Source: Rebecca billardiae RCC1528 (taxonomy: Eukaryota > Protista > Haptophyta). From it: 64,000 nucleotides of DNA. The DNA lies in the NCBI GenBank assembly GCA_965240325.2, contig OZ251251.1:1-64000 (forward strand), in the 5' to 3' direction. Each line of letters begins with the position of its first letter. The first letter of the stretch is position 1. Below are positions 6,929 through 63,822 of the stretch, piece after piece. The notes under the pieces were generated by a model, which worked only from the letters and a program-made list of their open reading frames with translations, was not told where the DNA came from and did no database searches. The position numbers and the translations under genes were made by a program.

Positions 6929-6979
<51 letters not shown>

Positions 6980-7226: not shown

Positions 7227-7259
<33 letters not shown>

Positions 7260-12566: not shown

Positions 12567-12567
12567 A

Positions 12568-12614
<47 letters not shown>
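12567..12614. repeat. (AT)n microsatellite
   Basis: About 24 AT dinucleotides with one interruption, between two convergent genes. Confidence 0.95.
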
Positions 12615-12618
<4 letters not shown>

Positions 12619-12983
12619 CTTGACGACGATGATATGACGCGCGACGTCAGCAATCATATCATATCATCGATTCATCGACGCGACGACCGGACTGCGCTAG
12701 TAGTGCTATACGCTCGGGCCTGATAGGCCGCCGCTATCACTGCTGCTATATATGTGATATGCGCTGATGCCTCTCGCGGACCCGGTCTTATAGCAGTAGG
12801 CAGTCCATGGCTTCGGTTCCGCAACCCCCGTGCCCGAGAGACGGGCACTCGTCACGGCCGCGTACTACAACACGCGCACGCGCGGCCGGGCGGCGGGCTC
12901 CGTGCACACCCGGGCACTCGTTTTGGCACCGAGGCGGCGCGCGCCCATCGCCGCTCATCACTTCGCAGCAGCAGCGGAGATGA

Positions 12984-14453
12984 TCAGCACGCGCCCTCCC
13001 CGTCCACGCCCGCTGTGCACACAGGCGGCAGCAGCCGCTCGATGCGCGTAGGCGTGGTTAGGTCGTCGCGCTCATCGTCTGCACGGCTCTTGCCGAGGCC
13101 GAGCTCAGCCGAGTGCTGGCCGCACGCGTACACGGCCCCGTCTGCGGTGGCGTACAGCGCGTGGTAGCTGCCGAAGGCGCAGCTTGCACCCCGCCCCGGC
13201 AGCAGCGCTTTTGCAGGCGCACTCGCGGAAGGCGCGCTCGGCACGGGCCCGAGCCCCAGCTGGCCGTTGCTGTTGTTCCCAAACGCGTGCACGCTGCCGT
13301 CCGCGCACAACACCGCGCTGGTGCGATAGCCAGCGCTGGCGCGCACGGCACGCATGCCACCCAGTGCTTCGATGCGTGTGGGCACCGGACGACGCAGCTC
13401 GACACCGTGGCCGAGCGCGCCACCGCCACCGCCCCCGAAGGAGTGCACGCCGCCCGCTGCGTCCACCACCAGGCTGTGCACTGAGCCCGCGCTCACGTGC
13501 ACAATGCGCACGCCAGCAAGCGCCTCGATGCACCTAGGCGTGTGCTGATCCTGCTCGTCACCGTGGCCAAGGCGACCAGCATTGGCAATCCCGCACGAGT
13601 ACACGGCGCCGCACGCCGCGAGCAGCAGCGTGTGCAGTTGGCCAGCGGCCACGCCGCCCACGCGCACGCCGTCCAGCGCCTCGATGCGCGTCGGCTCCAG
13701 CCGAACCTTCGTGTCGCCGTGGCCGAGCTGGCCGTAGATGTTGTTGCCCCAGCTGTACGCGCAGCCAGCTGCGGTGAGCGCGAGGCTGTGGTACCCACCG
13801 GCCATAATGCCCACGACGGCTGCACCGTGCAGCGCCCTGCCGGGAGCAAACGAACGCCGCTCCTCCGTGTCCCCCAGCCCGAGCTGGCCGTAATTGTTGC
13901 TGCCACAGCCGTACACGGCGCCGGCCTCGCTCAGCGCGAGCAGGTGCTCCAGGCCAGCGGAGACGGCGCAGATGCGCACGGCCGCGAGCGAGGCGACGCG
14001 CGTGGGCACGCGCACATCGGGGCTCTCCGTATGCCCGATGGCCACGTGCGTCCGATACTCATCTGTCGCCCACCCATTGTTCAGCACCGCCTCCTCGCCG
14101 CACGTGTGCAGCCCGCCCTCCGCGTCCACAAACGCGCTAAAGCCGTCGCCGGCAGCCAACGGGGAGGCGTGCGCGCGCGCAAGCACGTGCACGCTCTCGC
14201 GCGCGAAGAGCTCCTCCCGCCAGCTGCACACGCGCGCTGGCAGCACAGCCGGCAGCGCGTGCGCGTGCCCGCGAGCCCGCGCGCGCTCGCGCAGCGCGTG
14301 CTCGACCGGCGAGCGGCCGCCCGGCGCGCCGCGGAAGAGGCGGGCGGTGGCGTTGGCGGCGGCGAGGTCCGATGGCGACAGGGCGGCGCAAAGCACGCGC
14401 TCGATCACCTCCGCGGGCAGGTCGGCGAGGCGCGTCGCCGTCGTGGTGGCCAT
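12984..14453 (-). CDS. F-box + RCC1 (7-blade beta-propeller) protein, intronless; dispersed paralog of the 50-59 kb array
   Basis: F-box-like LADLPAEVIERVL..LSPSDLAAANATARLF. Seven RCC1 repeats (e.g. SAGLEHLLALSEAGAVYGCGSNNYGQLGLG; AGGYHSLALTAAGCAYSWGNNIYGQLGHG). Confidence 0.9.
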   Translation of the reverse strand: MATTTATRLADLPAEVIERVLCAALSPSDLAAANATARLFRGAPGGRSPVEHALRERARARGHAHALPAVLPARVCSWREELFARESVHVLARAHASPLAAGDGFSAFVDAEGGLHTCGEEAVLNNGWATDEYRTHVAIGHTESPDVRVPTRVASLAAVRICAVSAGLEHLLALSEAGAVYGCGSNNYGQLGLGDTEERRSFAPGRALHGAAVVGIMAGGYHSLALTAAGCAYSWGNNIYGQLGHGDTKVRLEPTRIEALDGVRVGGVAAGQLHTLLLAACGAVYSCGIANAGRLGHGDEQDQHTPRCIEALAGVRIVHVSAGSVHSLVVDAAGGVHSFGGGGGGALGHGVELRRPVPTRIEALGGMRAVRASAGYRTSAVLCADGSVHAFGNNSNGQLGLGPVPSAPSASAPAKALLPGRGASCAFGSYHALYATADGAVYACGQHSAELGLGKSRADDERDDLTTPTRIERLLPPVCTAGVDGEGAC

Positions 14454-36707: not shown

Positions 36708-36923
36708 GGCGGACGGCTGCCAACGCTGGCCTTGCCCACCGCAGCACTCGTGTCGGGTCCTCAGCGTGATGCGCGCGTCTCACAGCCGGCGGCAGAGGAC
36801 TGCGCAAGCTGAATGTGCAGGACTGCGACCCGCGAAAGTCCGGCCAGCAGGCGGCGTGCGTGCGCTCACTGCTACCGGTAGAGAATGGCCAACCGTCATC
36901 CTCTCCCGATGACGCTCGTCGGT

Positions 36924-38426
36924 ATGTCCTCCGCCGCCCCCGCCGCCGCGCGCTCGCTGGCCGACCTACCGCCCGACGTGCTCGAGCGGGTCCTGAGCGT
37001 GCTGCCGTCGGCGCGCGACCTCGCAAGCGCCAATGCCGAGTCGCGCCTCTTCCGTGGCGCGCCGCCTGGCGGCCGCTCGCCGCTCGAGCGCGCGCTGCGC
37101 GAGCGCTCGCTGGCGCGCGGGCACGCGCGCTGGCTGCCGGAGGCGCTGCCCACGGGCGTGCGCACGTGGATCGAGGAGCTGCTTGGGCGCGATCGCGTGT
37201 GCGAGCTCGCGCACGCTCACGCGAGCGTCGTCGCCGTGGCGTACGCGGCCCTCCACGAGCGGTCACTCCTGAGCGCGTTTGTGGACGCTGACGGCGGGCT
37301 GCACACGTGCGGCGAGAATCACGAGTACTCGGCGATAATGACTCATCTGTCGGATGCGGTCCATGGGCACCCTGGCCAGCCCGCGGTCCTTGTACCGAGA
37401 CGCGTCACCTCGCTCAGCGCGGTGCGCGTGCGTGCCGTTGCTGCGGGTGGGTTCCACCTGCTCGCGCTGAGCGAGGCCGGCGCCGTGTACAGCTGCGGCA
37501 GCAACTTGAACGGCCAGCTCGGGCTGGGCGACCGCGTCGTGCGTCCGACGCCCGTGCACGTCGTGGCGTTGTCCTCCGAGTGCGTGGTGGGCATCTGTGC
37601 GGGTAAGTACCACAGCCTCGCCCTCACAGCAGCGGGGTGTGTGTACGGCTGGGGCGACAACAATTACCGCCAGCTCGGGCGCGACGCGGACACTTACGAG
37701 GAGGGCGACGACGGCTGGGTGACTTATACTCGGCTGGAGCCGGCGCGCATCAAGGCGTTGAAGGGCGTGCGCGTGGGTGGCATCTCCGCTTGGCGAAACC
37801 GCACGCTACTGCTGACAGTCGGCGGCGCCGTGTACACCTGCGGTGAAGGCTGCGGCCAGAAAGATGGCACCCCTGAGCACGACACTGCACTGAGCGCGGT
37901 GCGTCCCGTGCACGTGAGCGCGGGCAACGGCTTCTTCCTGCTGGTCGACGGGTTGGGCGACGTGTACTCCACTGGCGTGTACCCGCCTCGGGCTGATGAA
38001 CGGCGCCGGAGCTCTCACCGCACGCCCGCGCGCGTGGACGGTCTGGCGGGCGTGCGCGCAGTGCGCACATGTGCTGGGCCCTACGCGGCAGCCATCCTGA
38101 GCGCGGACGGCGGCGTGTACACGGTTGGGTACCACGAATGGCACATCAGCCTCAGCCCGAGCGGGCTCTCCCGCATCACGCCTTTGCGCGTGCCGATGCC
38201 TGCTAATACCCGCGTGGTCGAGTGCGCGCTTGGCTACGTCCACGCGCTGTTTGTGACGTCGGACGGCGCCGTGCACTCGTGCGGCGATCACTCGGGCGCT
38301 CTCGGCCGCGGCGTGCAGAGCGTGGACACCGAGATCAACGTCGAGACGGACCATCCCATCGAGCAGGTGCCGCTGGGGCTGGTGGAGCGGCTGCCTGCCG
38401 TGCGCGTCGGGCTGTCCTGGACCTGA
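36924..38426 (+). CDS. F-box + RCC1 propeller protein, intronless, diverged paralog
   Basis: LADLPPDVLERVLSVLPSARDLASAN..RLF F-box. RCC1 repeats (AAGGFHLLALSEAGAVYSCGSNLNGQLGLG; AGKYHSLALTAAGCVYGWGDNNYRQLG); blades 4-6 remodelled. Upstream ATGs at 36885/36909 are alternatives. Confidence 0.88.
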   Translation: MSSAAPAAARSLADLPPDVLERVLSVLPSARDLASANAESRLFRGAPPGGRSPLERALRERSLARGHARWLPEALPTGVRTWIEELLGRDRVCELAHAHASVVAVAYAALHERSLLSAFVDADGGLHTCGENHEYSAIMTHLSDAVHGHPGQPAVLVPRRVTSLSAVRVRAVAAGGFHLLALSEAGAVYSCGSNLNGQLGLGDRVVRPTPVHVVALSSECVVGICAGKYHSLALTAAGCVYGWGDNNYRQLGRDADTYEEGDDGWVTYTRLEPARIKALKGVRVGGISAWRNRTLLLTVGGAVYTCGEGCGQKDGTPEHDTALSAVRPVHVSAGNGFFLLVDGLGDVYSTGVYPPRADERRRSSHRTPARVDGLAGVRAVRTCAGPYAAAILSADGGVYTVGYHEWHISLSPSGLSRITPLRVPMPANTRVVECALGYVHALFVTSDGAVHSCGDHSGALGRGVQSVDTEINVETDHPIEQVPLGLVERLPAVRVGLSWT

Positions 38427-44707: not shown

Positions 44708-44746
<39 letters not shown>

Positions 44747-47700
44747 GCCGCTGCCGGCGAGTCGCAGCAGCGCGTGCACGCCGCCGCCACCGCCGCCGCC
44801 GCGTCCGCCGCCGCCGCCGCCGCCGCCGCCGACCGCCAGGCTGCCGCCGCCGAGGACGAGGACGAGGCCGGCAGCACGGACGGCGGCACGGCGACGGACG
44901 GCGGCGGCACCGACGCGGAGGACGGCGCCGACGGTGCCGCCGCCGCCGCACAGCTGATCCGCCGGCTGGCCGCCGCCGCGGACGGCGGCGGCGGCGACGA
45001 CGACGGCGCCGACGATGATGCGCCGCCGCCGCCGCCAGCCGGCGCCGCCGCCGGCGGCGCGGACGGCATGGACGGCGGCGGCGGCGGCGACTCGACGGAC
45101 ACGACGGAGGACGACACGCGCGCCACCGCCACGCCCAACTCGGTGCTGCGCTCGCGCACGCGCGGCGCGCGCGCGTGCACGCCGACCGCGCACACGCCCG
45201 CGCCGCGCGCCGCCGCCGGCGCGGGCGGCGGCGGCGGCGGCGGCGGCAGCGTCCGCGCGGGTGCGCGCGGGTGCGCGGGCGGCGGCGCGCGCGGCGCGTG
45301 CTCGTCGCGCTCGCTCACGCCGTCCTCCGGCGGCAGCGCCGTCGGGCCCGCGGCCGCCGCCGCCGCCGCGGGCTCCGCCGGCAGCGCCGGCAGCGCGGTG
45401 CTCGGCCGCGTGCGCTTGCTGTCGCGAGCGGCGGCGGGCGCGGCCGCGCAGCGCGCCGCCGCCGCAGACGCCGACGACGACGACGGCGACGACGCGGAGG
45501 CGGAGGGCGGCGACGGCTCGGCGACGGAGGGCGAGGGCGAGGCGGCGGGTGTGCCAGGCGCACGCGGCGGCAGCGGCGCGCACACGCCGCCCGCGCCGCC
45601 GCCCCGGCCGAGCGAGTGCGCGCGCGGCACGCGGTCGGCGCGCGGCCGAGCGCAGCCGCGCACGCCCGCGGCGCGCGCGGGCGCGGCGGAGGGCGCGCCG
45701 GGGGCGGAGGCGGAGGCGGAGGCGCTGCTGGCGGAGGGGCGGCGCGCGCGCGAGGCGATCTGCGCGCTCGCCGCCGCGCCCGCGGCCGACGCCGACGGCG
45801 GCGGCGGCGGCGGCGGCGCGGCCGCGGCTACGGCGCGCGGCCGCGCGGCCGGGCTGGGCGGCGGCGGCGGCGGCGGCGGCGGCGGGCGCGGCGGGCGGCG
45901 CGGCGCCAACACGCGCGCCGGCCGCGGCGGTGGCGGGCGCGGTGGCGCGAGGCGCGGCGCCGCCGCCGAGCACGACGCCTCCGACGCCGACGCCGACGCC
46001 GACGGCAGCGCCGCCGCGTTCGAATCCGAGCTCGCCGCCGCCGAGCCGGGCGGCGCGCTCGGCGGCGCCGACGCGGCCGACGCGGAGGCGGCGGCGGCGG
46101 AGGAGGCGGCGGAGGGCGGCGGCGGCGGCGCGTGCCGGATCGTGTGCCGCGCGGACGGCACGTGCGCGCGCGCGCCGCCGCCTTCCTGGGTCTCGCCGCC
46201 CGCGCACACCGTCGCGCCCGCGCCGCCGCCCAAGCGACTGCTCCGGACTGTCGGCAAAGCGATCGGCGACTTCGGGATGATTTCGCATGGCGACCGGCTG
46301 CTGCTCGGGCTCTCGGGGGGCAAGGACTCGATGGCGCTGCTGCACGTGCTGCTGCACCTGCAGCGCCGCGCGCCCGTGCGCTTCGAGCTCGCAGCCGCGA
46401 CCGTCGACCCGCAGGTGAGCGCGCGCGCGCGCTGTGCCGGCGCTGGCTGGCCGGCGGCAGCGCGCGCCGTGCGCGCCGTGCGCGCGCCGCCCACGACCGC
46501 GCCGCGCGCGCCACTCGCTCACTTCTCCCCCGCCGTACCCACGCTCCCCGCTGCGCGTGCCGCCGTGCGCAGGCCGAATCGTACGACCCGTCCGGGCTGG
46601 GCGGGTACGTGCGCGCGCTGGGCGTGCGGCACCACCTGCTGAGCGCGGCCGTGTACGCGCAGGCGATGGCGACGCAGCCGACGAGCATCTGCGCGTACTG
46701 CTCGCGCATGCGCAGAGGTGCGGGCGTGCGGCGTGGAGTGGGCACGCGAAACGCGCGCGCGCACGCACCGGCGGTGCTGAGCGCGCACGCACGCGCTGAC
46801 ACACGACACACACATGCGCGCGCACACACGCACACGCGCACACACGCACACACACACACACGCGCAGGCCTGCTGTACCGCTGCGCGGTGCGGCACGGGT
46901 ACAACGTGCTCGTGCTCGCGCACCACCTGGACGACCTCGCCGAGTCGTTCGTGATGAGCGGTGCGCGCGCCTCGCGCGCCGCCGCACGCGCAGCCGCGCA
47001 TGCGCCGAGCGCATGCACGCGCGCGCGCGCGCGAGGCGGACCGCGTCTGCGGCTGGCACCGACGCGCGCCGGCTGAGTGGCGCGACGCACCGCCCACCGT
47101 GCCCTGCCGCGCGCGCGCGCAGCCTTCAACAACGGCTCGCTGCGCACGATGAAGGCGAACTACGCGGTCGCGCCGCCCTCGGCCGCGCGCGCGGGCGTGC
47201 GCGTGATCCGGCCCCTGTGCTACACGCGCGAGGCGGAGCTGCGCGCATTCCAGCGGTGCGTGCGCCGCGCGTGCGCCGCGCCGGGCTGGTGGCTAGTGGG
47301 CGGCGCATGGAGTGCCGCGCCCGTCGCGCCACCCCGCCTCCTCACCACCTTGCCCCCTCTCTCCCGCACGCCCGCCCGCCCGCCATGCTGATTCGCCGCC
47401 ATGCTGCATTTGCTGATGGCCGCCGCAGCGAGTCCGGGCTGCCCGTGCTGGAGGACAATTGCCCGGCGTGCTTCGAGGCGCCGCTCGAGCGCGCGCGCGT
47501 GAAGCGGCTGCTCGCGCAGCAGGCACGCGCCACGCGAGCGCCGCCGCGCGGTGCGCGCGCCGCCGCGCGCATCTCGCCGACGCCACTCGCCTCGCGCAAC
47601 GCGTCGCCCCCACCCGCGTCCCGTGCCCGCGCGCGCCGCCGTCCGCGCGCGCGCGCATGCGCACACGCATGCGCGCGCGCGACGCGCGCTCCCCGCAGGA

Positions 47701-50219: not shown

Positions 50220-51650
50220 TCAGGGCGGCCCACAGCGCAGTAGGGGCGGCAGCTGCGACACGCGCTGCAGCGGCGTTGGCTGCTCTCCGCCATCTATGCC
50301 CACGCCCAGGCCGAGCGCGCCCGAAGGTCTGCCGCACGCGTGCACGCCGCCGTCCGCTGTGACACAGAGGGCGTAGGCTTCACCCAGTGAGCAGTCGAGC
50401 ACGCGCGCATGCGCGAGGCCCTCCACCCGCGTCGGCAGCGTGCGATTCGTTCGGTCCCCCAGCCCCAGCTGGCCGTATAAGTTGATCCCAAACGTGTGCA
50501 CGCTGCCGGCCGCGCACAACACAGCGCTGGTGTGACAGCCCGCGCTGGCACGCACGGCACGCATGCCGCCCAGTGCTTCGATGGGCGTGGGCACAAGGCG
50601 ATGTTCCGCGACACCGTGGCCGAGCGCGCCACCGCGACCATTTCCGAAGGAGTGCACGCCGCCCGCTGCGTCCACCACCAGGCTGTGCACTGAGCCCGCG
50701 CTCACGTGCACGGCGCGCACGCCCGCGAGCGCCTCGATGCGCCTCGGCGTGCGCTGATCCTGCTCGTCACCGTGACCAAGGCGACCACCAATGGCAGTCC
50801 CACACGAGTACACGGCACCGCACGCCGAGAGCAGCAGCGTGTGCCGGCCGCCCGCGGCCACGCCGCCCACGCGCACGCCGTCCAGCGCCTCGATGCGCGT
50901 CGGCTCCAGCCGCTGCTCCGTGCTGCCGTGGCCGAGCTGGCCATGGAAGTTGCGCCCCCAGCTGTACGCAACGCCAGCGGTCGTGAGCGCCAGGCTGTGG
51001 CAAGTGCCAGCGCTTATGCTGACGACGACCTCCGCGCCCCACGCACCCACCTGCACGAACGCCCGTCGCTCAGCCTTGTCGCACACGCCCAGCTGGCCGT
51101 CGTCGTTGCCGCCGCACGCGTACACGTCGCCCGCCTCGCTCAGCGCGAGCAGGTGGAGCCCACCCGCCGCCACGGCCCGTACGCGCACCGCCTGAAGCGA
51201 GCCCACGCGCGTCGGCACGAGCACGGGCGTCTCCATGCTGAGCTCGGGATGGCCCAGCGGTGCGCCGCATGTGTGCACGCCGCCGTCCGCGTCAACAAAG
51301 GCGGAAAAACTCATCACGATGGTTGAGCTGGCGGACGCGACATGCGCGTGCGCGTGCGCGAGCTCCGTTATGCGCTCGCGCGCGAACAGCTCCTCCGCCC
51401 ACGTGGACTCGCCCGCTGGCAGGGCCGCCGGCAGCGCGGCCTTGTGCCCGCGCGCGCGCGCGCGCTCGCGCAGCGCGTGCTCGAGCGGCGCGCCGCGGAA
51501 GAGGCGAGCGGCGGCGTTGGCGGCGACGAGGTCGCGCACGTCATCGAGATGGACCAGGATGCGCGCGATCAGCTCGGGCGGCACGTCGGTCAGCCGGACG
51601 TCCGCCGCTGCCGAGCGCGCCTGGGGACGCGAGCGCGTCGTCGGTGCCAT
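50220..51650 (-). CDS. F-box + 7-blade RCC1 protein, array copy A (476 aa)
   Basis: MAPTTRS..LTDVPPELIARILVHLDDVRDL..ANAAARLFR F-box; seven RCC1 repeats; intact and intronless. Confidence 0.92.
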   Translation of the reverse strand: MAPTTRSRPQARSAAADVRLTDVPPELIARILVHLDDVRDLVAANAAARLFRGAPLEHALRERARARGHKAALPAALPAGESTWAEELFARERITELAHAHAHVASASSTIVMSFSAFVDADGGVHTCGAPLGHPELSMETPVLVPTRVGSLQAVRVRAVAAGGLHLLALSEAGDVYACGGNDDGQLGVCDKAERRAFVQVGAWGAEVVVSISAGTCHSLALTTAGVAYSWGRNFHGQLGHGSTEQRLEPTRIEALDGVRVGGVAAGGRHTLLLSACGAVYSCGTAIGGRLGHGDEQDQRTPRRIEALAGVRAVHVSAGSVHSLVVDAAGGVHSFGNGRGGALGHGVAEHRLVPTPIEALGGMRAVRASAGCHTSAVLCAAGSVHTFGINLYGQLGLGDRTNRTLPTRVEGLAHARVLDCSLGEAYALCVTADGGVHACGRPSGALGLGVGIDGGEQPTPLQRVSQLPPLLRCGPP

Positions 51651-51699
51651 CTGTTGCCCACGCGCCGACGATTGATGACGGGGCGCCGGCAGCCCGAGG

Positions 51700-51870
51700 C
51701 AGGCAGGACGACAGTAGTACAGTCATACACAGTACGACTGCTTTGTTGAACGTGTACAGCCGTATTTTGAAGTTTACGGCTACTTGTACAATGAATGCAT
51801 AGCAGGTGCGACAGCACGGTGGCGGTGTGCGCGCGGAACCCACGCGCGCAGCTGATGCTCAATGGCAATG
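51700..51870 (-). promoter_or_regulatory. Conserved upstream module of the array genes (GTAC/TGTACA cluster + invariant TGCGCGCG-gaaccca-CGCGCGCA inverted repeat)
   Basis: Identical 23-nt inverted repeat at 51828, 53753, 55671, 57625 and 62198, lying 172-178 bp upstream of the ATGs of copies A-D. TGAACRTGTACAG and ACTTGTACA-type motifs are adjacent. A regulatory role is inferred. Confidence 0.5.
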
Positions 51871-52155
51871 CGCGCGTCATCACCATCTCACTCATCTCGA
51901 TGATGAGTGCCCGCCTACCACGCCACGCGCAGCGCGAGCTCGAGCGGCTGCTCCGCAGCACCGCCGTCGGTGCGGCCACAAGCTGGCTGCATGCGCGGCC
52001 CGGGTGGCACGGGCTGATGGCAGCTGCCTGCTCAGTCGCTGGCGCATGGGTGCGACGCCTCACTGACCATGTCCGAAGAGAGCAGCGGCGAGCACTCGCA
52101 CACGCCGCACTCGCAACACTGCGCGTGAGCACCGCACCCGCCACTGGCCGGACGC

Positions 52156-53580
52156 TCAGCGCAGCCCACAGCGCAGGGGCGGCAGCTGCACCACGCACTG
52201 CAGCGTCGGCTGCTCTCCGCCATCGTTGCCCACGCCCAGGCCGAGCGCGCCCGAATGTCGGCCGCACGCGTGCACGCCGCCGTCCGCTGTGACACAGAGG
52301 GCGTAGTCTTGACCCAGTGAGCAGCCGAGCACGCAATCATGCGCGAGGCCCTCCACCCGCGTGGGCAGCGTGCGATCCACTGTGTCCCCCAGCCCCAGCT
52401 GGCCAAAGCCGTTGTGCCCAAACGCGTGCACGCTGCCGTCCGCGCACACCACCGCGCTGCTGTGACAGCCCGCGCTGGCGCGCACGGCACGCATGCCGCC
52501 CAGTGCCTCGATGCGCGTGGGCACCACCTCACGCACGTCGTCACCGTGGCCAAGCGCGCCACAATCACCGTCTCCGAAAGAGTGCACGCCGCCCGCCACG
52601 TCCACCACCAGGCTGTGCGCCGTACCAGCGCTCACGTGCACAATGCGCACGCCAGCGAGCGCCTCAATGCGCAGTGGCGTGCGCTGAGGCTGCTCGTCAC
52701 CGTGGCCAAGGCGGCCGTCATAGGCACATCCGCACGCGTACACGGCGCCGCACGCCGAGAGCAGCAGCGTGTGCTCACTGCCCGCAGCCACGCCGCCCAC
52801 GCGCACGCCGTCCAGCGCCTCGATGCGCGTCGGCTCCAGCCGGTCCTCAGTGTCGCCGTGACCGAGCTGGCCATAGAAGTTGCGGCCCCAGCTGTACGCC
52901 GCGCCGGCAGCCGAGACCGCGAGGCTATGGCGATCACCCGCGCTGATGCCGACGACGAGCTCCGGACCCAGCACCGCCACCTGCACCAACGGCCGTCGCT
53001 CAGCCTTGTCGCCCACGCCCAGCTGGCCGTAGGCGTTGCGGCCACACGCGTACACGGCGCCCGCCTCGCTCAGCGCGAGCAGGTGGTACCCACCCGCCGC
53101 AACGGCGCGCACGCGCACCGCCACCAGCGAGCTCACGCGCGTCGGCACGAGCACGTACGTCTCCCTGCTGAGCTCGGGATGGCCCAGCGGTGCGCCGCAC
53201 GTGTGCACGTTGCCGTCCGCGTCAACAAAGGCGGAAAAACTCATCATGATGGTTGAGATGGCGGACGCGACATGCGCGTGCGCGTGCGCGAGCTCCGTTA
53301 TGCGCTCACGCACGAAAAGCTCCTCCGCCCACGTGGACACGCCCGCGGGCAGGGCCGCCGGCAGCGCGGCCTTGTGCCCGCGCGCGCGCGCGCGCTCGCG
53401 CAGCGCGTGCTCGAGCGGCGCGCCGCGGAAGAGGCGAGCGGCGGCGTTGGCGGCGGCGAGGTCGCGCACGTCATCGAGGTGGACGAGGATGCGCGCGATC
53501 AGCTCGGGCGGCACGTCGGTCAGCCGGACGGCCGCCGCTGCCGAGCGCGCCTGGGGACGCGAGCGCGTCGTCGGCGCCAT
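52156..53580 (-). CDS. F-box + 7-blade RCC1 protein, array copy B (474 aa)
   Basis: Same architecture; ATG at 53580 by homology to copy A. Confidence 0.92.
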   Translation of the reverse strand: MAPTTRSRPQARSAAAAVRLTDVPPELIARILVHLDDVRDLAAANAAARLFRGAPLEHALRERARARGHKAALPAALPAGVSTWAEELFVRERITELAHAHAHVASAISTIMMSFSAFVDADGNVHTCGAPLGHPELSRETYVLVPTRVSSLVAVRVRAVAAGGYHLLALSEAGAVYACGRNAYGQLGVGDKAERRPLVQVAVLGPELVVGISAGDRHSLAVSAAGAAYSWGRNFYGQLGHGDTEDRLEPTRIEALDGVRVGGVAAGSEHTLLLSACGAVYACGCAYDGRLGHGDEQPQRTPLRIEALAGVRIVHVSAGTAHSLVVDVAGGVHSFGDGDCGALGHGDDVREVVPTRIEALGGMRAVRASAGCHSSAVVCADGSVHAFGHNGFGQLGLGDTVDRTLPTRVEGLAHDCVLGCSLGQDYALCVTADGGVHACGRHSGALGLGVGNDGGEQPTLQCVVQLPPLRCGLR

Positions 53581-54074
53581 GCTGTTGCCCACGCCGACCG
53601 AGTCGCTCGACGACGACGACGGTTGGCTGCCGGCTGCCCGACGCAGTCAGGACGACAGTACAGTCATACAGTACGGCTCTATTGAACATGTACAGTCGTA
53701 TCTTACTACTTGTACAGTGCACAGCAGGTCGTGCGACAGCACGGCGGCGGTGTGCGCGCGGAACCCACGCGCGCAGTTGGTGCTCAATGGCAGTGCGCGC
53801 GTCATCACCTTCTCCCTCTCCATTAGCATAAGTGCCCGCCTACCACGCCACTCGCGGCGCAAGCTCGAGCGGCTGCTCCAGCCCCGCCGTGCGGCCACAA
53901 GCTGGCTGCATGCGCGGCCCGGGTGGCACGGGCTGATGGCAGCTGCCTGCTCAGTGGCTGGCGCATGGGTGCGACGCCTCACTGACCATGTCCGAAGAGA
54001 GCAGCGGCGAGCACTCGCACACGCCGCACTCGCAACACTGCGCGTGAGCACCGCACCCGCCACGGGCAGGTCGC

Positions 54075-55499
54075 TCAGTGCAGCCCACAGCGCAGGGGCG
54101 GCAGCTGCGCCACGCGCTGCGGCGTCGGCTGCTCTCCGCCATTGCTGTCCACGCCCAGGCCGAGCGCTGCCGAATGTGCGCCGCACGCGTGCACGCCGCC
54201 GTCCGCTGTGACGTAGAGGGCGTGGGTGTCGCCAAGTGAGCAGTCGACCACGTGTGCATGCGCGAGGCCCTCCACCCGCTCGGGCAGCGTGCGATCCACT
54301 GTGTCCCCCAGCCCCAGCTGGCCGTAGTAGTTGAACCCAAACGTGTGCACGCTGCCGTCAGCGCACACCACAGCGCTGGAGAGAAAGCAAGCGCTGGCGC
54401 GCACGACACGCGTGCCGCCCAGCGCTTCGATGCGCGTAGGCACAAAGCGACGTTCCGCGACACCATGGCCGCGAGCGCCACCGCCACCGCCCCCGAAGGA
54501 GTGCACGCCGCCCGCCGCGTCCACCACCAGGCTGTGCGCCGTACCAGCGCTCACGTGCACGGCACGCACTTCTGATAGCGCCTCGATGTGCAGTGGCGTA
54601 CGCTGCCGCTGCTCGTCACCGTGGCCAATGCGAGTAAACGAGCAATCGCCGCACAAGTACACGGCGCCGCACGCCGAGAGCAGCAGCGTGTGCCCGCTGC
54701 CCGCGGCCACGCCGCCCACGCGCACGCCGTCCAGCGCCTCGATGCGCGTCGGCTCCAGCCGGTGCTCCGTGTCGCCGTGGCCGAGCTGGCCGTACTCGTT
54801 GTAGCCCCAGCTGTACGCCGCGCCGGCAGCCGCCAGCGCGAGGCTGTTATGGAAACCGGCAGCGATGCTGAGGACGAGCTCCGCACCCAGCGCCGCCACC
54901 TGCACGAACGCCCGTCGCTCAGCCTTGTCGCCCACGCCCAGCTGGCCGTACTTGTTGCGGCCGCACGCGTACACGGCGCCCGCCTCGCTCAGCGCGAGCA
55001 GGTGCGTGCCGCCGGCCGCCACTGCACGCACGCGCACTGCCGCCAGCGCGCTTACGCGCGCCGGCACGTGCACGGCCGTCTCCATGCTGAGCTCGGGATG
55101 GCCCAGCGGTGCGCCGCATGTGTGCACGCCGCCGGCACCGTCAACAAAGGCGGAGAAGCCCATGCCGAAGGTTGGGCTGGCGGACGCGACGCGCGCGTGC
55201 GCGTGAGCTAGATCGGAGATGCGCTCGCGCGCGAGCAGCTCCTCCGCCCACGTGGACACGCCCGCGGGCAGGACCGCCGGCAGCGCGGCCTCGTGCCCAC
55301 GCGCGCGCGCGCGCTCGCGCAGCGCGTGCTCGAGCGGCGCGCCGCGGAAGAGGCGCGCGGCGGCGTTGGCGGCGACGAGGTCGCGCACGTCATCGAGGTG
55401 GACGAGGATGCGCGCGATCAGCTCGGGCGGCACGTCGGTCAGCTGCACGGTCGCCGCTGCCGAGCGCGCCTTGGTACGCGAGCGCGTCGTCGGCGCCAT
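54075..55499 (-). CDS. F-box + 7-blade RCC1 protein, array copy C (474 aa)
   Basis: Same architecture; ATG at 55499 by homology. Confidence 0.92.
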   Translation of the reverse strand: MAPTTRSRTKARSAAATVQLTDVPPELIARILVHLDDVRDLVAANAAARLFRGAPLEHALRERARARGHEAALPAVLPAGVSTWAEELLARERISDLAHAHARVASASPTFGMGFSAFVDGAGGVHTCGAPLGHPELSMETAVHVPARVSALAAVRVRAVAAGGTHLLALSEAGAVYACGRNKYGQLGVGDKAERRAFVQVAALGAELVLSIAAGFHNSLALAAAGAAYSWGYNEYGQLGHGDTEHRLEPTRIEALDGVRVGGVAAGSGHTLLLSACGAVYLCGDCSFTRIGHGDEQRQRTPLHIEALSEVRAVHVSAGTAHSLVVDAAGGVHSFGGGGGGARGHGVAERRFVPTRIEALGGTRVVRASACFLSSAVVCADGSVHTFGFNYYGQLGLGDTVDRTLPERVEGLAHAHVVDCSLGDTHALYVTADGGVHACGAHSAALGLGVDSNGGEQPTPQRVAQLPPLRCGLH

Positions 55500-56022
55500 G
55501 CTGTTGCCCACGCCGGCCACGACGACGACGACGGTTGGCTGCCGGCTGCCCGACGCAGGCAGGACGACTGTACAGTCATACAGCACGACTCTGTTGAACG
55601 TGTACAGTCGTATCTTACTGCTACTTATTGTTGTACAGTGCATAGCAGGTGCGACAGCACGACGGCGGTGTGCGCGCGGAACCCACGCGCGCAGCTGATG
55701 CTCAATGGCACTGTGCGCATCCATCATCCATCAGATGCTGCTCAATCGTCTCACTCTCGATGATGAGTGCCGGCCTACCACGCCAATCGCAGCGCAAGCT
55801 CGAGCGGCTGCTCCAGCCCCGCCGTGCGGCCACACGAGGCTGCATGCGCGCCCAGCTGTGACCTGTGTGGCACGGGCTGATGGCAGACTCTGCCTGCTCA
55901 GTGGCTGGCGCATGGCTGCAACGCCTCACTGACCATGTCCGAAGAGAGCAGCGGCGAGGACTCGCACACGCCGCACTCGTGAGACTGCGCGTGAGCACCT
56001 CACCCGCCACTGGGCCGGCCTC

Positions 56023-57453
56023 TCAGGGCGGCCCACAGCGCAGGGGCGGCAGCTGCGACACGCGCTGCAGCGGCGTTGGCTGCTCTCCGCCATCGTTGCC
56101 CACGCCCAGGCCGAGCGCGCCCGAAGGTCTGCCGCACGCGTGCACGCCGCCGTCCGCTGTGACGCAGAGGGCGTGGGAGAGGCCAAGCGAGCAGTCGAGC
56201 ACGCGCGCATGCGCGAGGCCCTCCACCCGCTCGGGCAGCAGCGCGCAAAACACTTGGTCCCCCAGCCCCAGCTGGCCCCATTCGTTGTCCCCAAACGTGT
56301 GCACGCTGCCGTCCGCGCACACCACCGCGCTGGTGTAAGAGCCCGCGCTGGCGCGCACGGCACGCATGCCGCCCAGTGCTTCGATGCGCGTAGGCACCAA
56401 GCGATTGGTCACGTCACCGTGGCCGAGCGCGCCACGAGAGCCGTCTCCGAGGGAGTGCACGCCGCCCGCTGCGTCCACCACCAGGCTGTGCTCGTAGCCA
56501 GCGCTCACGTGCACGGCGCGCACGCCGTCCAGCGCCTCAATGCGCAGTGGCGTGTGCTGCGCCTGCCAGTCGCCGTGGCCAAGGCGGCCGTACACGCCGT
56601 CGCCGCACGAGTACACGGCGCCGCACGCCGTGAGCAGCAGCGTGTGCCGGCCGCCCGCCGCCACGCCGCCAACGCGCACGCCGTCCAGCGCCTCGATGCG
56701 CATCGGCTGCAGCCGGTCCTTCTTGTTGCCGTGGCCGAGCTGGCCTTGGCTGTTGTAACCCCAGCTGTACGCCGCGCCACCAGCCGTGAGCGCGAGGCTG
56801 TGGTCGTCGCCAGCGCTTATGCCGACGACGAGCTCCGCGCCCAGCGCCGCCACCTGCACGAACGCCCGTCGCTCAGCCTTGTCGCCCACGCCCAGCTGGC
56901 CGTAGGCATTGCGGCCGCACGCGTACACGGCGCACGCCTCGCTCAGCGCGAGCAGGTGCGTGCCGCCGGCCGCCACTGCACGCACGCGCACTGCCGCCAG
57001 CGAGCTTACGCGCGCCGGCACGAGCACGCGCGTCTCCATGCTGAGCTCGGGATGGCCCAGCGGTGCGCCGCATGTGTGCACGCCGCCGGCACCGTCAACA
57101 AAGGCGGAGAAGCCCATGCCGAAGGTTGGGCTGGCGGACGCGACGCGCGCGTGCGCGTGAGCTAGATCGGAGATGCGCTCGCGCGCGAACAGCTCCTCCG
57201 CCCACGTGGACACGCCCGCGGGCAGGGCCGCCGGCAGCGCGACCTCGTGCCCACGCGCGCGCGCGCGCTCGCGCAGCGCGTGCTCGAGCGGCGCGCCGCG
57301 GAAGAGGCGAGCGGTGGCGTTGGCGGCGGCGAGGTCGCGCACGTCAAAGAGATGGACCAGGATGCGCGCGATCAGCTCGGGCGGCAGGGCCGTCAGCCGC
57401 ACCGCCGCCGCTGCCGAGCGCGCCTTGGTACGCGAGCGCGTCGTCGGCGCCAT
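56023..57453 (-). CDS. F-box + 7-blade RCC1 protein, array copy D (476 aa)
   Basis: Same architecture; F-box LTALPPELIARILVHL. Confidence 0.92.
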   Translation of the reverse strand: MAPTTRSRTKARSAAAAVRLTALPPELIARILVHLFDVRDLAAANATARLFRGAPLEHALRERARARGHEVALPAALPAGVSTWAEELFARERISDLAHAHARVASASPTFGMGFSAFVDGAGGVHTCGAPLGHPELSMETRVLVPARVSSLAAVRVRAVAAGGTHLLALSEACAVYACGRNAYGQLGVGDKAERRAFVQVAALGAELVVGISAGDDHSLALTAGGAAYSWGYNSQGQLGHGNKKDRLQPMRIEALDGVRVGGVAAGGRHTLLLTACGAVYSCGDGVYGRLGHGDWQAQHTPLRIEALDGVRAVHVSAGYEHSLVVDAAGGVHSLGDGSRGALGHGDVTNRLVPTRIEALGGMRAVRASAGSYTSAVVCADGSVHTFGDNEWGQLGLGDQVFCALLPERVEGLAHARVLDCSLGLSHALCVTADGGVHACGRPSGALGLGVGNDGGEQPTPLQRVSQLPPLRCGPP

Positions 57454-57993
57454 GCTACCGCGAATTGACCCGACGATGACGGTTGGCGACGGCTGGTTGC
57501 CCGACGCAGGCAGGACGACAGAACATCAGTCATACAGTACGGCTCTATTGAACGTGTACAGTCGTATCTTACTAGTAGTACTTGTACAGTGCACAGCAGA
57601 TCGCGCGACAGCACGGCGGCGGTGTGCGCGCGGAACCCACGCGCGCAGCTGCCGCTGCTCGCCAATGCTGGCACTGCGCGCATCATCTCCACCTCACTCT
57701 CGATCAGACGAGTGCCGCCCCCCTACAATGCCCTCGTCATATCCGCCGGCGCCCCAGCTCCACGCGCAGCGCGAGCTCGAGCGGCCCTGCTCTACGGCAC
57801 CGCTGTGCCGCCACAAGCTGGCTGCATATGCGCGGCCAGCGGCTGGCACGGGCTGATGGCAGCTGGCCTCAGCGGCTGGCGCACGGGTGCGACGCCTCAC
57901 TGACCATGTCCGAAGAGAGCAGCGGCGAGCACTCGCACACGCCGCACTGGCAACACTGCGCGTGAGCACCGCACCCGCCACGGGGCCGGCCAC

Positions 57994-59418
57994 TCAGCAC
58001 GCCTCAGAGCGCAGGGGCGGCAGCTGTGCCACGCACTGCGGCGTCGGCTGCTTTCCGCCATCGCTGTCCACGCCCAGGCCGAGCGCGCCCGAATGTAAGC
58101 CGCATGCGTGCACGCCGCCGTCCACTGTGACGTAGAGGGCGTGCCCGTAGCCAAGCGAGCAGTCGAGCACGCGCGCATGCGCGAGGCCCTCCACCCGCTC
58201 GGGCAGCGTGCGATCCATTCGGTCCCCCAGCCCCAGCTGGCCAAAGCTGTTGGACCCAAACGTGTGCACGCTGCCGTCCGCGCACACCACAGCGCTGGTG
58301 TAAGAGCCAGCGCTGGCGCGCACGGCACGCATGCCGCCCAGCGCCTCGATGCGCGTGGGCACCGATCGACGCCCCTCGTCACCATGGCCGAGCGCGCCAC
58401 AAGAGCCGTCTCCGAAGGAGTGCACGCCACCCGCTGCGTCCACCACCAGGCTGTGCGCCGTACCAGCGCTCACGTGCACGGCACGCACGCCCGTGAGCGC
58501 CTCGATGCGCAGTGGCGTGCGCTGCCGCTGCTCGTCACCGTGGCCAAGGCGAGTAAACGAGCCGTCGCCGCACGAGTACACGGCGCCGCACGCCGAGAGC
58601 AGCAGCGTGTGGCCGCCGCCCGCGGCCACGCCGCCCACGCGCACGCCGTCCAGCGCCTCGATGCGAGTCGGCTCCCACCGGTCCTCCGTGTCGCCGTGGC
58701 CGAGCTGGCCTTCGCTGTTGCCTCCCCAGCTGTACGCCGCGCCGGCAGCCGTCAGCGCGAGGCTGTTATGGAAACCGGCAGCGATGCTGAGGACGAGCGC
58801 CGCGCCCAGCGCCGCCACCTGCACGAACGCCAGTCGCTCAGCCTTGTCGCACACGCCCAGCTGACCGGAGTCGTTGTAGCCGCACGCGTACACGGCGCCT
58901 GCCTCGCTCAGCGCGAGCAGGTGATTGTAGCCGGCCGCCACTGCACGCACGCGCACTGCCGCCAGCGAGCTTACGCGCGTCGGCACGAGCACGCGCGTCT
59001 CCATGCTGAGCTCGGGATGGCCCAGCGGTGCTCCGCATGTGTGCACGCCGCCGGCACCGTCAACAAACGCGGAGAAGGCTATGCCAAAGGTTGGGGTGGC
59101 AGACGCGACGTGCGCATGCGCGTGCGCGAGATCAGAGATGAGCTCGCGCGCGAACAGCTCCTCCGCCCACGTGGACACGCCCGCGGGCAGGGCCGCCGGC
59201 AGCGCGGCCTCGTGCCCGCGCGCGCGCGCGCGCTCGCGCAGCGCGTGCTCGAGCGGCGCGCCGCGGAAGAGGCGCGCGGCGGCGTTGGCGGCGACGAGGT
59301 CGCGCACGTCATCGAGGTGGACGAGGATGCGCGCGATCAGCTCGGGCGGCACGTCGGTCAGCCGCACGGTCGCCGCTGCCGAGCGCGCCTGGGTAGGCGC
59401 GCGCGTCGTCGGTGCCAT
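57994..59418 (-). CDS. F-box + 7-blade RCC1 protein, array copy E (474 aa); upstream region interrupted by an insertion
   Basis: Same architecture; ATG at 59418 by homology; ORF intact. Confidence 0.9.
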   Translation of the reverse strand: MAPTTRAPTQARSAAATVRLTDVPPELIARILVHLDDVRDLVAANAAARLFRGAPLEHALRERARARGHEAALPAALPAGVSTWAEELFARELISDLAHAHAHVASATPTFGIAFSAFVDGAGGVHTCGAPLGHPELSMETRVLVPTRVSSLAAVRVRAVAAGYNHLLALSEAGAVYACGYNDSGQLGVCDKAERLAFVQVAALGAALVLSIAAGFHNSLALTAAGAAYSWGGNSEGQLGHGDTEDRWEPTRIEALDGVRVGGVAAGGGHTLLLSACGAVYSCGDGSFTRLGHGDEQRQRTPLRIEALTGVRAVHVSAGTAHSLVVDAAGGVHSFGDGSCGALGHGDEGRRSVPTRIEALGGMRAVRASAGSYTSAVVCADGSVHTFGSNSFGQLGLGDRMDRTLPERVEGLAHARVLDCSLGYGHALYVTVDGGVHACGLHSGALGLGVDSDGGKQPTPQCVAQLPPLRSEAC

Positions 59419-59633
59419 GCTGTTGCCCACGCCGGGCCGAGTCACTCGACGACGACGGTTGGCCGACTTCCCGAACTCAGCCGACTGGGAGGACGACATT
59501 ACCCCCATACAATCGGCATACAGTTTACTATGATTTAACGTGCCCACTTGGTTAAGGCGTGATTAACGCCATCCAACACTGCACAAAGACACCGCCACAA
59601 AACAGACCACACTAGCTTACGACTGCCTTACAA

Positions 59634-62105
59634 TTTTTTTTTAAAATTCCCCTTTATAACGGGCTCCGGATGATCAGACTGGCGGCCGAAGCCTCTGACA
59701 GCCCTACCCTGGCCAGCCCCCAACCAACCACCACCCTCACCCCAACCTCAAACCACTGACAGAGACACCAAGTGCCTTGACACCACTCCGCTGTGGATGG
59801 ACAGCCCGCCTCCAGAGGGGGCGGGGGTATGCCATTGCCAACAGCATACTAACAAGCCCAACACTGTGGGGTGGTCCCAGGTACAAGCAGTGCACGGCCT
59901 TGCGATTCAAGATCATCGAGTTTGAGCCGAGTCGGCAGAAGGGGCACCCCCTAGGGTGCCCCAGTGTGGGCAGAGGGCCAGCCACTAGCCGATCCCTGCG
60001 CGGGGAAGGGGACTGAGGGGACTGTCATCGGGCCCAGTAGCTGGGCAGGGGTCTGGGCCACTGGCCCTGGCAGTGAGGCGCCGGTAGTATTTCACTCGTG
60101 CAGCTATGGAGGCAGAGGGGGTCATGTCAGACATGTGTGCTACATCGGGCATCAAGTCAGGGCGTGGGCCGCTGTAGGAAGCAAGCAAAGTGGTGGCGAT
60201 GGCTAAAACGCCTGGGGAGGTGTCGTTCGCTCGCCTCTTCCTGCTGCGCTTTGCAGGGGGTAGCGTGCTCCGCTGCGGCACATTTGCCTGGCGGGGTGGG
60301 CAGTGTCGTTTGGGCGGGGGGCTGTCTTGCTGAGCTTGACTAGGAGGAGGCAGCCTGCGCCTGGGGGCTGCCAGTGGCCTGGCAGAGCCAGCAGGTGGCT
60401 GTGTGGCCTGGTGTCCAGTGTCTGACTGTGCAAGGCCGCTTTGAGCTCCGTCGTTACCGGTGTGACTGCCAGCAGCAGGGTCTGCCTCCATCTCAGGGCC
60501 CCCATGTGTCAACACATTGTCCGGCCGCGGACCCACATCGCTGCGAGCCAGCAGGGTGGCATATTGGAGCGGCCATGCCACAAGAGGTGTGGCAGGCTGC
60601 AGTGGCCACGCAATCACCATAGGGAGGGGGCGAGCACGCTGAAGAGGCCACGCCCGCAAGAGTAGCTGGGGGCGCACGTGGTGACCGCGCGCTATGGGCT
60701 GGTGCAGGTTGGCCTGCCCCGCGCCTGCCTGCGAGCCCTGGCCAGCCTGGACAGGGGGTTGCTGCTGGATGACAGGTGGTCCTTGCAACTGCTGATTATT
60801 CATGGCAATAAACGCCCCTCCTGGGCCTGCCTGTGCTTGTGGGGGTGGGGGCTGCCCCCCCAGGCCGTGCCCAGGCGGCGGTCGAAGCTCCCTGGCATGT
60901 CGAAGGAGACGTCCTGCCTTTGACAGCTGGGAGTCCACGTCCTTGCGGGCCTGCATGATGCCTAGCCCTGCCTTCAGTAAGGCCACGTGCATGGTCCTGC
61001 CGAGATGCACGTTGGCCCCCACAGTGGTCTTCAGTGTGCTGGGCACACTGCCCATGAGGGCAGCCCCAGAGCACACATGATGTGCCAAGTTCCATGCTGC
61101 AGCCTGTCCCTGCATGAAGGGCTCAATTGCATGCGATACGCTTATGGCAGCAGCCATTCGGTAGGTATCGACCTCAGGGCACTCAGACGAGAAGAGGTGA
61201 TGCTCAGTATCTGGCGCTGGATGTAGCAGTGGAGCATGTTCGCAGAGGGGGCAGGCATCGCTAAATGCCGCCCCTGACTAGAATCGCACAGAGAGCAACG
61301 TCGGGTCTCGCAGGGCAGCCGGCTGCAGGAACTCATATCCGTGGTGGAGTATGTAGTAGGCAGGCACAGTGTTGGCCTGCCAGGTCCGTAGTACGCCAGT
61401 GGAGGCCTCTGGCCACACGCCAGTCCATTCGCCCACCAAGTCACAGCTGGACTTGGTGGCTTGCAGGTGGGTTGCCCTTTGTGACAGCACACTGTCGTAC
61501 ACAAGGGGCTTGATTCGGCCTGCCACTGGCTCTCCATCGGCCAGCTGTACCAGCGCATGGGAACCCACATTTGGGTGGCCACCTCTCTTGTGAGTCACAC
61601 AGGGGGTTGTGGGGTCAGAGCAGCAGAGCTTGGCCCCCGCATCGCTGCATGCGTTGAGCAGGGTTTTGGGGTTCATCCCTGCTTGGCGCAAAGCCACCAC
61701 ACTGTGTTGGCTGACAGTGCAGTGCTGGTCCCCCGGAGTGTGCGTGAGGCTGAGGTGTAGCGCAGCCGCATCGTCAGCAGAGTGCGCCTTGACATGCTCA
61801 AATGAAGTGGTCACTGTGGTGCTGCCATGCAGCAAGCGGCGCCAGCCCACAAGGCTCATGACCCTGGCGATGTATGCTGCGTACGCGTGGTGCCCCTGCC
61901 GCAGCCGTCGGTCCCAGGGGTCGTTTTGCCACATTTCGGCGTCAGCGGCCTTTACCATTTCCTGCAGGTCAGTGCACACCAGCAGGTTGGCGGTGGGGTC
62001 TATCTGCACCAATGGCATCGGTGATGGCCATCATATGAATTCGGCTGGGCCTGGTGCCTGGTGCCCCTCGAACTTGGAGCAATATACACATGCACAGGGG
62101 CAGTG
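59634..62105 (-). mobile_element. 5'-truncated, decayed non-LTR retrotransposon (LINE) 3' portion: RNase H + CCHC zinc knuckle + C-terminal tail + 3' UTR + short poly(A)
   Basis: RNase H motifs GHQAPGPAEF/MAITDA (frameshifted), LLVCTD, FEHVKAHS and LNACSDAGAK. After in-frame TAG 61278-61280 the frame continues CPLC..DTEHHLFSSECP (zf-RVT-type) into ORF 59985-61157. T9 run at 59634-59642. Lower GC than host genes. No RT domain in the window. Confidence 0.75.
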
Positions 62106-62267
62106 TAATGACTCATCAGTATCTGAACGTGTACAGTCGTAGTGCCGTACGTACTTGTATAGAATGTACGACAGATAGCAAGTGCGTCAGCACGGTGTGC
62201 GCGCGGAACCCACGCGCGCAGCTGCTGCTCAATGGCACTGTGTGCATCCATCCAGATGCTCAATCGT

Positions 62268-63599: not shown

Positions 63600-63822
63600 G
63601 GATGGTGATGGTCGCGCGGCGCACGCATGATGGTCGCGCGCGCGTGATGATCGGCGCATGATGATCGGTGCGCGCGCATGACGGCGCGCACGAATGATGA
63701 TCGGCACAAGCGCATGATGATCGGCACGCACGCATGATGATCGGAGCGCGCGCATGATGAACTGATGATCGGCACATAATGATCGGTGCGCGCGCATGAC
63801 CGTGCGCGCGCGTGACGATCAC
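63600..63822. repeat. Degenerate ~20-bp minisatellite (CATGATGATCGG + GC-rich spacer)
   Basis: About 10 imperfect copies of ATGATGATCGG(T/C)GCGCGCGC. Confidence 0.85.

Follow-up and report, generated by a model that had tools for sequence, protein, structure and literature searches.

Diversifying F-box families are known from nematodes (F-box/FTH), from plants (F-box-associated), and from the S-locus, and both the S-locus F-box arrays and the nematode F-box expansions show similar tandem, diversifying behavior. A locus of comparable behavior lies in a 64,000-nucleotide stretch of DNA from the haptophyte Rebecca billardiae RCC1528 (assembly GCA_965240325.2, contig OZ251251.1, positions 1 to 64,000; the whole stretch is called the window below), where five tandem genes, copies A-E, encode proteins with an F-box-like N-terminus and an RCC1-like propeller (50220-59418). 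Like the described families, this array is a lineage-specific tandem expansion in which the F-box is conserved and change falls in the putative substrate-binding domain (the nonsynonymous divergence, dN, is 0.05 in the N-terminus versus 0.58 in the loops), and recognition of diverse or foreign proteins has been proposed for it as it has for them. Unlike them, it uses an RCC1-like seven-bladed propeller as its recognition domain, its named relatives come from haptophyte algae, its variation is limited to loops of 2-6 residues that are repeated in each blade, and strong gene conversion homogenizes the rest of its genes; positive selection is not formally proven here. The array thus belongs to a known kind, the fast-evolving F-box receptor families, and what is new is the RCC1-like propeller together with the named haptophyte relatives. 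Our preferred interpretation, to which we assign a probability of roughly 60%, is that the encoded proteins are substrate receptors of the SCF (Skp1-cullin-F-box) type in which the copies retain distinct ligand-binding top faces and all other parts are homogenized.

Receptors of the Fbw7/Cdc4 type share with the array proteins the serial arrangement of F-box, helical linker, and beta-propeller, and the Fbw7 substrate docks on the top face of the propeller. Fbw7, however, is a single conserved gene with an eight-bladed WD40 propeller, whereas the array is diversifying and its propellers are RCC1-like with seven blades. The animal protein FBXO24 is an F-box protein with an RCC1 domain (PMC10932545). 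It has this two-domain architecture in common with the array, a likeness known from architecture alone, but it is present as one conserved copy that functions in spermiogenesis, and the array is multi-copy. The nearest solved structure is that of UVR8, whose dimer and partner-binding residues coincide with the hypervariable positions of the array. UVR8 has no F-box, and the array proteins have no tryptophan triad: the GWRHT motifs (W233/W285/W337) do not occur in the array, where the aligned sites read TC/DR/FH/DD, SV/TA/YE, and similar. The array proteins are not photoreceptors.

The first-pass annotation of this DNA cited the combination of F-box and RCC1 domains as the single gene FBXO24 and knew of no described recognition locus built on RCC1 propellers. 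Multi-copy sets of such proteins are not without precedent, since giant viruses already carry annotated ones. Among viral predicted structures (BFVD), the matches include proteins of Marseillevirus LCMAC102 (A0A481YTH4), the Pithovirus LCPAC series, and Orpheovirus (A0A2I2L466), several per genome, that are annotated as 'F-box and regulator of chromosome condensation repeat protein'. F-box and propeller are both aligned, at 14-23% identity (best match 461 columns, E = 9e-34). Because giant viruses carry such annotated examples, the F-box/RCC1 architecture is not unique to cells. The viral proteins have the same architecture as the array, but there is no evidence that they are specifically related to this family, and they are presumably used to hijack the host SCF machinery. 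Many tailed-phage proteins annotated as tail fiber or RCC1 also match in BFVD with RCC1-like propellers, and the fold therefore serves as a receptor-binding module in phages too. In the literature that we searched, no haptophyte F-box/RCC1 family is described, and the giant-virus family is not discussed either. The many 'RCC1' matches in PMC4438323 appear to be the Roscoff strain numbers RCC1216 and RCC1217 rather than the protein.

Proteins of the array and their relatives

Copies A-E are five uninterrupted minus-strand open reading frames (ORFs) in tandem. Copies A (50220..51650, stop codon included) and D (56023..57453) encode 476 amino acids each, and copies B (52156..53580), C (54075..55499), and E (57994..59418) encode 474, counted in every case from a conserved MAPTTR start. 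The frame of copy C remains open further upstream, and its MAPTTR methionine was taken as the start. Copy A is identified as an intronless F-box/RCC1-like gene from its ORF, Pfam matches, and an AlphaFold model, and the other four from ORF, Pfam, and alignment. The proteins are 80-84% identical in the alignment, and the repeat unit of ~1.93 kb, intergenic DNA included, is 84-89% identical between units at the DNA level (blastn). A collapsed or duplicated assembly artifact, which the first-pass annotation had named as something that would overturn its idea, is ruled out because the units differ by 11-16% in DNA. That annotation read the genes correctly: the five tandem paralogs are intact at the coordinates it gave, each loop string that it quoted is found as written in the A-E alignment, and no copy is pseudogenized. 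It counted seven paralogs, and tblastn indeed recovers two further intact copies that are dispersed in the window. Paralog F (12984..14453, minus strand) encodes 489 amino acids (60% identical); paralog G (36885..38426, plus strand) encodes 513 amino acids, is older (47% identical), and has several eroded blade motifs in a still intact ORF. All seven genes are single ORFs without introns.

The propeller is the most clearly defined part of these proteins. In copy A it spans residues 105-463 (50262..51338, minus strand) and carries the hypervariable loops, which comprise G-x-N-x-x-G, AG-x-x-H, and a third segment after G-x-G-D. Pfam matches of the five copies to PF25390 (WD40_RLD) have E-values from 1e-69 to 3e-75 and those to PF00415 (RCC1) from 3e-59 to 5e-70 (copy A, 1e-71 and 2.7e-59, respectively), and A-E contain the seven tandem RCC1 repeats of ~50 residues by which Pfam recognizes RLD proteins. 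The AlphaFold model of copy A, computed from an alignment of 34 family sequences, has a mean predicted local distance difference test (pLDDT) score of 92.5 and a predicted template modeling (pTM) score of 0.90. It consists of three short N-terminal helices, a long helix at residues 84-100, and 27 strands that make up seven four-strand blades. The best Foldseek matches to this model are UVR8 (TM 0.92, ~30% identity) and the HERC2 RLDs (TM 0.82-0.84), followed by RPGR and RCC1. Guanine-nucleotide exchange on Ran is a trait of RCC1 proper that RLD proteins in general need not have.

The F-box assignment draws on several weaker matches. In copy A the F-box-like module occupies residues 18-66 (51453..51599, minus strand; three helices; Pfam F-box-like, E = 0.004) and is followed by a linker region at residues 67-104 (51339..51452, minus strand) with a DSSP helix at 84-100. 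The Pfam F-box-like scores are 19.0 bits for copy D (E = 1.2e-3) and 17.4 bits for the N-terminus of copy A (E = 3.9e-3), at a cut-off of 24.3 bits. At the family level, 19 of 32 aligned N-termini match PF12937 (F-box-like; best E = 2e-6) and 7 of 32 match PF00646, and the relatives above the Pfam gathering scores include P0238 (35.8 bits), P0222 (25.9 bits), and P0268 (24.8 bits, PF00646). A profile of the N-terminal module has FBXW7, FBXO31, and cyclin F as its top matches in the PDB, with weak E-values. A separate model of the N-terminus (pLDDT 76) shows three helices and the linker helix, and its top 25 Foldseek matches in the PDB are mostly Skp1-bound F-box proteins (Fbw7, FBXO31, FBG3, cyclin F, MAX2, D3, and FBXL2 at the top) with E-values of only 0.9-6; the alignment to Fbw7 covers F-box and linker together over 83-90 columns. 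The pattern L-P-x-E-L-x-x-x-I-L...D-L...R-L-F is the best-conserved stretch of the whole protein. The best description is therefore an F-box, a linker helix, and an RCC1-like propeller. The architecture claimed in the first-pass annotation therefore stands firmly for the propeller, while its F-box is weak in each window copy and clear at the level of the family. By sequence and model the layout would be that of Fbw7 with a different propeller, and the role as an SCF substrate receptor is putative.

The C-termini of copies A-D consist of a cysteine and three further residues (CGPP, CGLR, CGLH, and CGPP; 50220-50240 and equivalents). They have the spacing of a CaaX prenylation box with atypical residues, and the feature is missing in copy E and in most relatives.

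The family is large and deeply diverged. The closest database match to copy A is only 50% identical, and when a profile of the N-terminal module alone is used as the query, 504 clusters (50% identity) are recovered at E <= 1e-3 and 191 clusters at E <= 1e-10, so the family size is at least 191 clusters at this identity. Ten full-length profile matches were scanned: every one has an RCC1-like propeller, three score above the gathering cut-offs of the Pfam F-box models, and two have extra N-terminal ankyrin repeats. Named members come from Emiliania huxleyi (EOD07475.1, A0A7S3SEB9) and Pavlova sp. CCMP459, with 34-40% identity, and since members occur as MMETSP transcripts, the family is expressed in these two algae. 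In a maximum-likelihood tree, A-E form one clade (100/99) with F as its sister (98/93); two proteins from other organisms come next, and G lies outside (100/99). The monophyly of A-E makes the array a young, lineage-specific tandem expansion, with the proviso that concerted evolution can exaggerate such monophyly. Other family loci (L001-L006) form no arrays, and on other contigs, a Tara Oceans scaffold among them, the members are single intronless genes amid ordinary eukaryotic genes. A metagenome scan adds one distant relative (30% identity), and a scan of IMG/VR with the five-copy alignment found no relative.

Variation on one propeller face in a recombining array

When the seven blades are stacked on the glycine that closes the third strand and registers are counted from that glycine, the mean pairwise amino acid diversity among A-E is 0.63-0.84 at registers -16, -15, +1, +3, and +4, compared to a background of ~0.11. 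Registers -16 and -15 are the two unspecified positions of A-G-x-x-H, and +1, +3, and +4 are the variable sites of G-x-N-x-x-G. A third, weaker variable stretch at +11 to +16 (diversity 0.27-0.47) is absent from the first-pass annotation, whose claim of a constant scaffold with a variable surface is confirmed by this register-by-register diversity. In three other close subgroups, variability at these registers exceeds that of the rest of the protein by a factor of 3.5-5, which makes the pattern of constant scaffold and variable face a property of the family.

The variable columns are concentrated on one side of the propeller. In an antiparallel meander, loops a-b and c-d emerge on one face (X) and loops b-c and d-a on the opposite face (Y), and this definition makes no reference to variability. 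Among the 51 columns of the whole protein that have three or more residue states in A-E, 41 fall within the 126 codons of the face-X loops; the face-Y loops (76 codons) and the strands (154 codons) contain 3 each, and the 104 codons of N-terminal residues 1-104 contain a single one. This difference between face X and face Y plus strands is highly significant (Fisher odds ratio 18, p = 4e-15), and the scatter over both faces or the core that the first-pass annotation had regarded as fatal to its idea is not seen. In a sequence alignment to UVR8, registers +1/+3/+4 correspond to W94/D96/F97, registers -16/-15 to W233-R234 and W285-R286, and register +14 to D107. UVR8 residues R286, D96, and D107 form salt bridges across the dimer interface (PMC5091643), and the same surface is the contact surface in the RUP2 and COP1 complexes among the Foldseek structures. 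This coincidence of registers with interface residues places all three variable segments on one partner-binding face. The variable positions are enriched in Tyr (11.5% versus 1.3% elsewhere), Asp, Ser, and Phe, a composition typical of binding hot spots.

Copies A-E are recombination mosaics with pervasive gene conversion between them, a feature on which the first-pass annotation did not remark. Informative sites along the gene support clashing groupings (AB, CE, AD, CD, BD), 43% of informative site pairs are incompatible, and a permutation test of the pairwise homoplasy index (PHI) type gives 0.357 versus 0.425 +/- 0.010 (p < 0.0005). Loop cassettes recur in differing combinations, such as FHN with SFT in C and E, RNAYG in B and D, and SY in D and E. 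Paralog F, which is 37 kb away, has a middle section that is near-identical to the array copies, and its loop codons are identical to those of A at residues 320-321 and to those of C at 337-340. The lowest synonymous divergence (dS) of the gene, 0.11, is that of the N-terminal region.

Recombination invalidates the use of one tree, and site models based on a single tree were therefore set aside and replaced by pairwise and composite-likelihood codon models. Nei-Gojobori estimates of dN/dS (omega) among A-E are 0.64 for the whole gene, 0.45 for the N-terminus, 0.38 for the strands, and 0.43 for the face-Y loops. The topologically defined face-X loops have an omega of 1.0, or 1.6 (confidence interval [CI] 1.13-2.24) when measured against the dS of the rest of the gene, and the third segment has an omega of 1.7. 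For the 42 motif positions the value is 1.19 with the local dS of 0.49, and their dN of 0.58 divided by the dS of 0.16 in the rest of the gene gives 3.6 (CI 2.5-5.2). A minimum of 75 amino acid-changing events compared to 9 silent-only events is required at these positions, where events per site are 2.7 times as frequent as silent changes in the rest of the gene (p = 4e-10). The units diverge in their intergenic DNA (K = 0.10-0.20) in line with the scaffold dS, which argues that codon bias does not grossly deflate this neutral proxy. Amino acid divergence in the loops is about four times both the gene-wide synonymous and the intergenic divergence. With one synonymous rate for all codons, a pairwise composite-likelihood GY94 model gives an omega of 0.21 for the background, 1.18 for the third segment, and 3.96 for the motif positions (bootstrap CI 2.6-10.9, with no bootstrap <=1).

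Competing explanations

Under our preferred interpretation, frequent conversion among the copies, F included, keeps the F-box, linker, strands, bottom-face loops, and intergenic DNA ~85-95% alike, while three short loop segments per blade, all predicted to lie on the top face that corresponds to the UVR8 dimer and partner interface, stay radically different between copies. These loops are rich in Tyr, Ser, Asp, and Gly and may resemble a binding paratope. Each copy would then probably offer its own surface for ligand binding on a ubiquitin-ligase adaptor that all copies share, with diversifying selection as the probable force that upholds or drives the differences. Haptophytes, Emiliania huxleyi among them, are of major importance for primary production in the ocean, giant viruses control their blooms, and to our knowledge almost nothing is known about their intracellular recognition and defense systems. 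A constant ligase adaptor with a copy-specific propeller face and hundreds of diverged members would be a concrete candidate for such a system. At minimum, the array adds a new case to the evolution of lineage-specific repertoires of E3 receptors, and it is a clean natural example in which conversion homogenizes a scaffold but the copies continue to differ at a few codons in each repeat. An RCC1-like propeller with seven equivalent loop sets could also interest protein engineers as a binding scaffold.

Several observations weigh against this interpretation, among them the F-box scores of the window copies, all below the Pfam cut-off, and the E-values near 1 of the structural F-box matches. A model that allows the motif codons their own synonymous multiplier fits better (rho ~2.4-2.5, CI 1.3-11), and with this separate loop rate the motif omega is 1.6 (CI 0.3-4.1) with 15% of bootstraps <=1. 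Four-fold synonymous diversity, measured in conserved codons only, is 0.28 within two codons of the loops versus 0.12 farther away (permutation p = 0.0045), and this elevation suggests that the loops may be older rather than faster. GC content at third codon positions (GC3) is 0.68 at the variable codons versus 0.88 in the rest of the gene, which fits either recent turnover or escape from GC-biased conversion. The dN/dS above 1 that the first-pass annotation expected at the loops is thus found relative to the gene-wide synonymous rate (3.96) but is not significant relative to the loops' own rate, so that positive selection is likely, not proven. An honest reading of these numbers is that the loops evolve no slower than neutral sequence and that in total they have diverged 2.5-4 times as much as the gene around them. 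Five sequences cannot separate recurrent positive selection from older loop alleles that were shielded from homogenization; both imply that loop differences are kept despite a homogenizing background. Two further points concern structure and expression: the faces were assigned from strand topology and UVR8 homology and not from model coordinates, and copy E, which has a 2.66-kb insertion upstream, may not be expressed normally.

The rate data are what a neutral explanation, the main alternative, would draw upon. In it, unconstrained top-face loops (omega ~1) retain older divergence while patchy conversion repeatedly resets the scaffold, and no adaptation is involved. The local omega with its CI that spans 1, the 2.4-fold rise in synonymous divergence at and beside the loop codons, the strong recombination, and the variability of the same positions in the consensus of RCC1-like repeats generally are all compatible with it. 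However, conversion tracts would have to skip patches of two to four codons repeatedly in all blades unless converted loops were selected against, and such selection would itself be diversifying. Relaxation also leaves the enrichment in Tyr, Ser, and Asp rather than random residues, the seven intact ORFs out of seven, the third-segment omega of 1.2-1.7 despite a normal local dS, and the recurrence of the pattern in three other subgroups to be explained, and we regard it as unlikely. A different doubt attaches to the N-terminus, which might be a degenerate helical segment in proteins that are not ubiquitin-ligase adaptors, so that the propeller would act alone (for example, as a GTPase regulator or scaffold) and its loops would tune ordinary partners. 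Every window copy falls under the Pfam F-box cut-off, and the structural F-box matches have E-values near 1 for a model with a pLDDT of only 76. Yet the F-box-like pattern is the most conserved part of the protein (dN 0.05), family relatives clear the Pfam cut-offs, and F-box proteins make up nearly all of the best matches in sequence and in structure; this explanation is improbable.

The remaining alternatives concern the purpose and origin of the array. As a haptophyte repertoire of intracellular innate immunity, its hypervariable, Tyr-rich top faces would capture viral or transposon proteins for degradation by SCF ligases, new specificities would arise as conversion among the tandem and dispersed copies reshuffled their loop cassettes, and the giant-virus proteins of the same architecture would be counter-weapons or decoys. 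We judge this version decidedly unlikely as it stands, and the labels 'antibody-like' and 'immune locus' in the first-pass annotation are speculation. Its 'antibody-like repertoire' is also overstated for five to seven germline copies whose sequence gives no sign of somatic diversification. SCF adaptors of this kind might instead serve self/non-self recognition in mating, as at the S-locus, or constitute a selfish gene family. This is very improbable: it draws on analogy with the S-locus F-box arrays and nematode F-box expansions, whereas no linked partner gene (S-RNase-like or toxin) is recognized among the window neighbors and family members elsewhere are solitary, with ordinary genes around them. 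That the array is giant-virus DNA inserted recently, or an assembly artifact, is scarcely credible and already largely refuted. Giant viruses do carry F-box and RCC1 proteins with the same fold layout, and the GC content of the array (~0.70) is below that of the flanking DNA in a window that ranges from 0.60 to 0.89 (2-kb windows). But the identity to the viral proteins is only 14-23%, the scan of IMG/VR with the five-copy alignment gave no relative, the units differ by 11-16%, the relatives lie among ordinary eukaryotic genes, and the scaffold GC3 of 0.88 is near the 0.90-0.98 of host exons, as found in the ordinary neighboring gene pieces.

Spacers, an insertion, and the surrounding window

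The spacer between copies B and A (51651..52155, minus strand) comprises the 3' flank of B and the 5' flank of A, and it is alignable with the three equivalent spacers at 53581-54074, 55500-56022, and 57454-57993 (K = 0.10-0.20 among the four). The first ~130 nucleotides after the stop codons hardly differ from unit to unit and are better conserved than much of the coding sequence, and a second conserved block lies ~170-220 nucleotides upstream of each start codon. These blocks could be a 3' untranslated region or promoter element, or a region in which conversion is especially frequent.

The upstream region of copy E is interrupted by an insertion of ~2.66 kb (59464..62123) that went unremarked in the first-pass annotation. 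It is positioned 30-95 nucleotides upstream of the start codon. Spacer homology ends at 59447-59463 and picks up again at 62124-62225 (minus strand; blastn), which is a displaced remnant of the upstream spacer block of the array. The insertion contains two minus-strand ORFs (59985-61157 and 61278-62018; GC3 0.64-0.71), neither of which has a match in Pfam, and an RNase H-like reading of one of them was dropped for this reason. The insertion may be an unclassified mobile element. Just past the array is a perfect 125-bp direct repeat (62268-62392 and 62937-63061, 669 bp apart), and a degenerate 20-bp tandem repeat with ~7-8 copies occurs at 63619-63799. Rfam and tandem-repeat scans returned nothing that bears on the array.

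Elsewhere in the window, two stretches with a GC content of 86-89% (4000-8000 and 43300-47100) keep ORFs of >1000 codons open in several frames on both strands. Their translations are rich in Ala, Gly, Arg, and Pro and are compositional artifacts, not genes, and ORF lists for this window are unreliable because of them. Ordinary neighbors include an exon of a PP-loop ATPase (46181-47400, plus strand; Pfam ATP_bind_3) and a leucine-rich repeat exon (9602-9931, plus strand). A stretch at 28774-29073 (plus strand), which has no Pfam match, is one that we take to be cap-binding-protein-like. A 155-amino acid ORF at 36243-36707 (minus strand), divergent from paralog G, also has no Pfam match, and its GC3 of 0.91 is coding-like. 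The sole database relative of a PG-rich ORF at 8476-9255 (plus strand) is an unnamed Logan protein. Near paralog F, the IYIYIY... at the start of ORF 10368-12653 implies an (AT)n-type microsatellite at ~12600.

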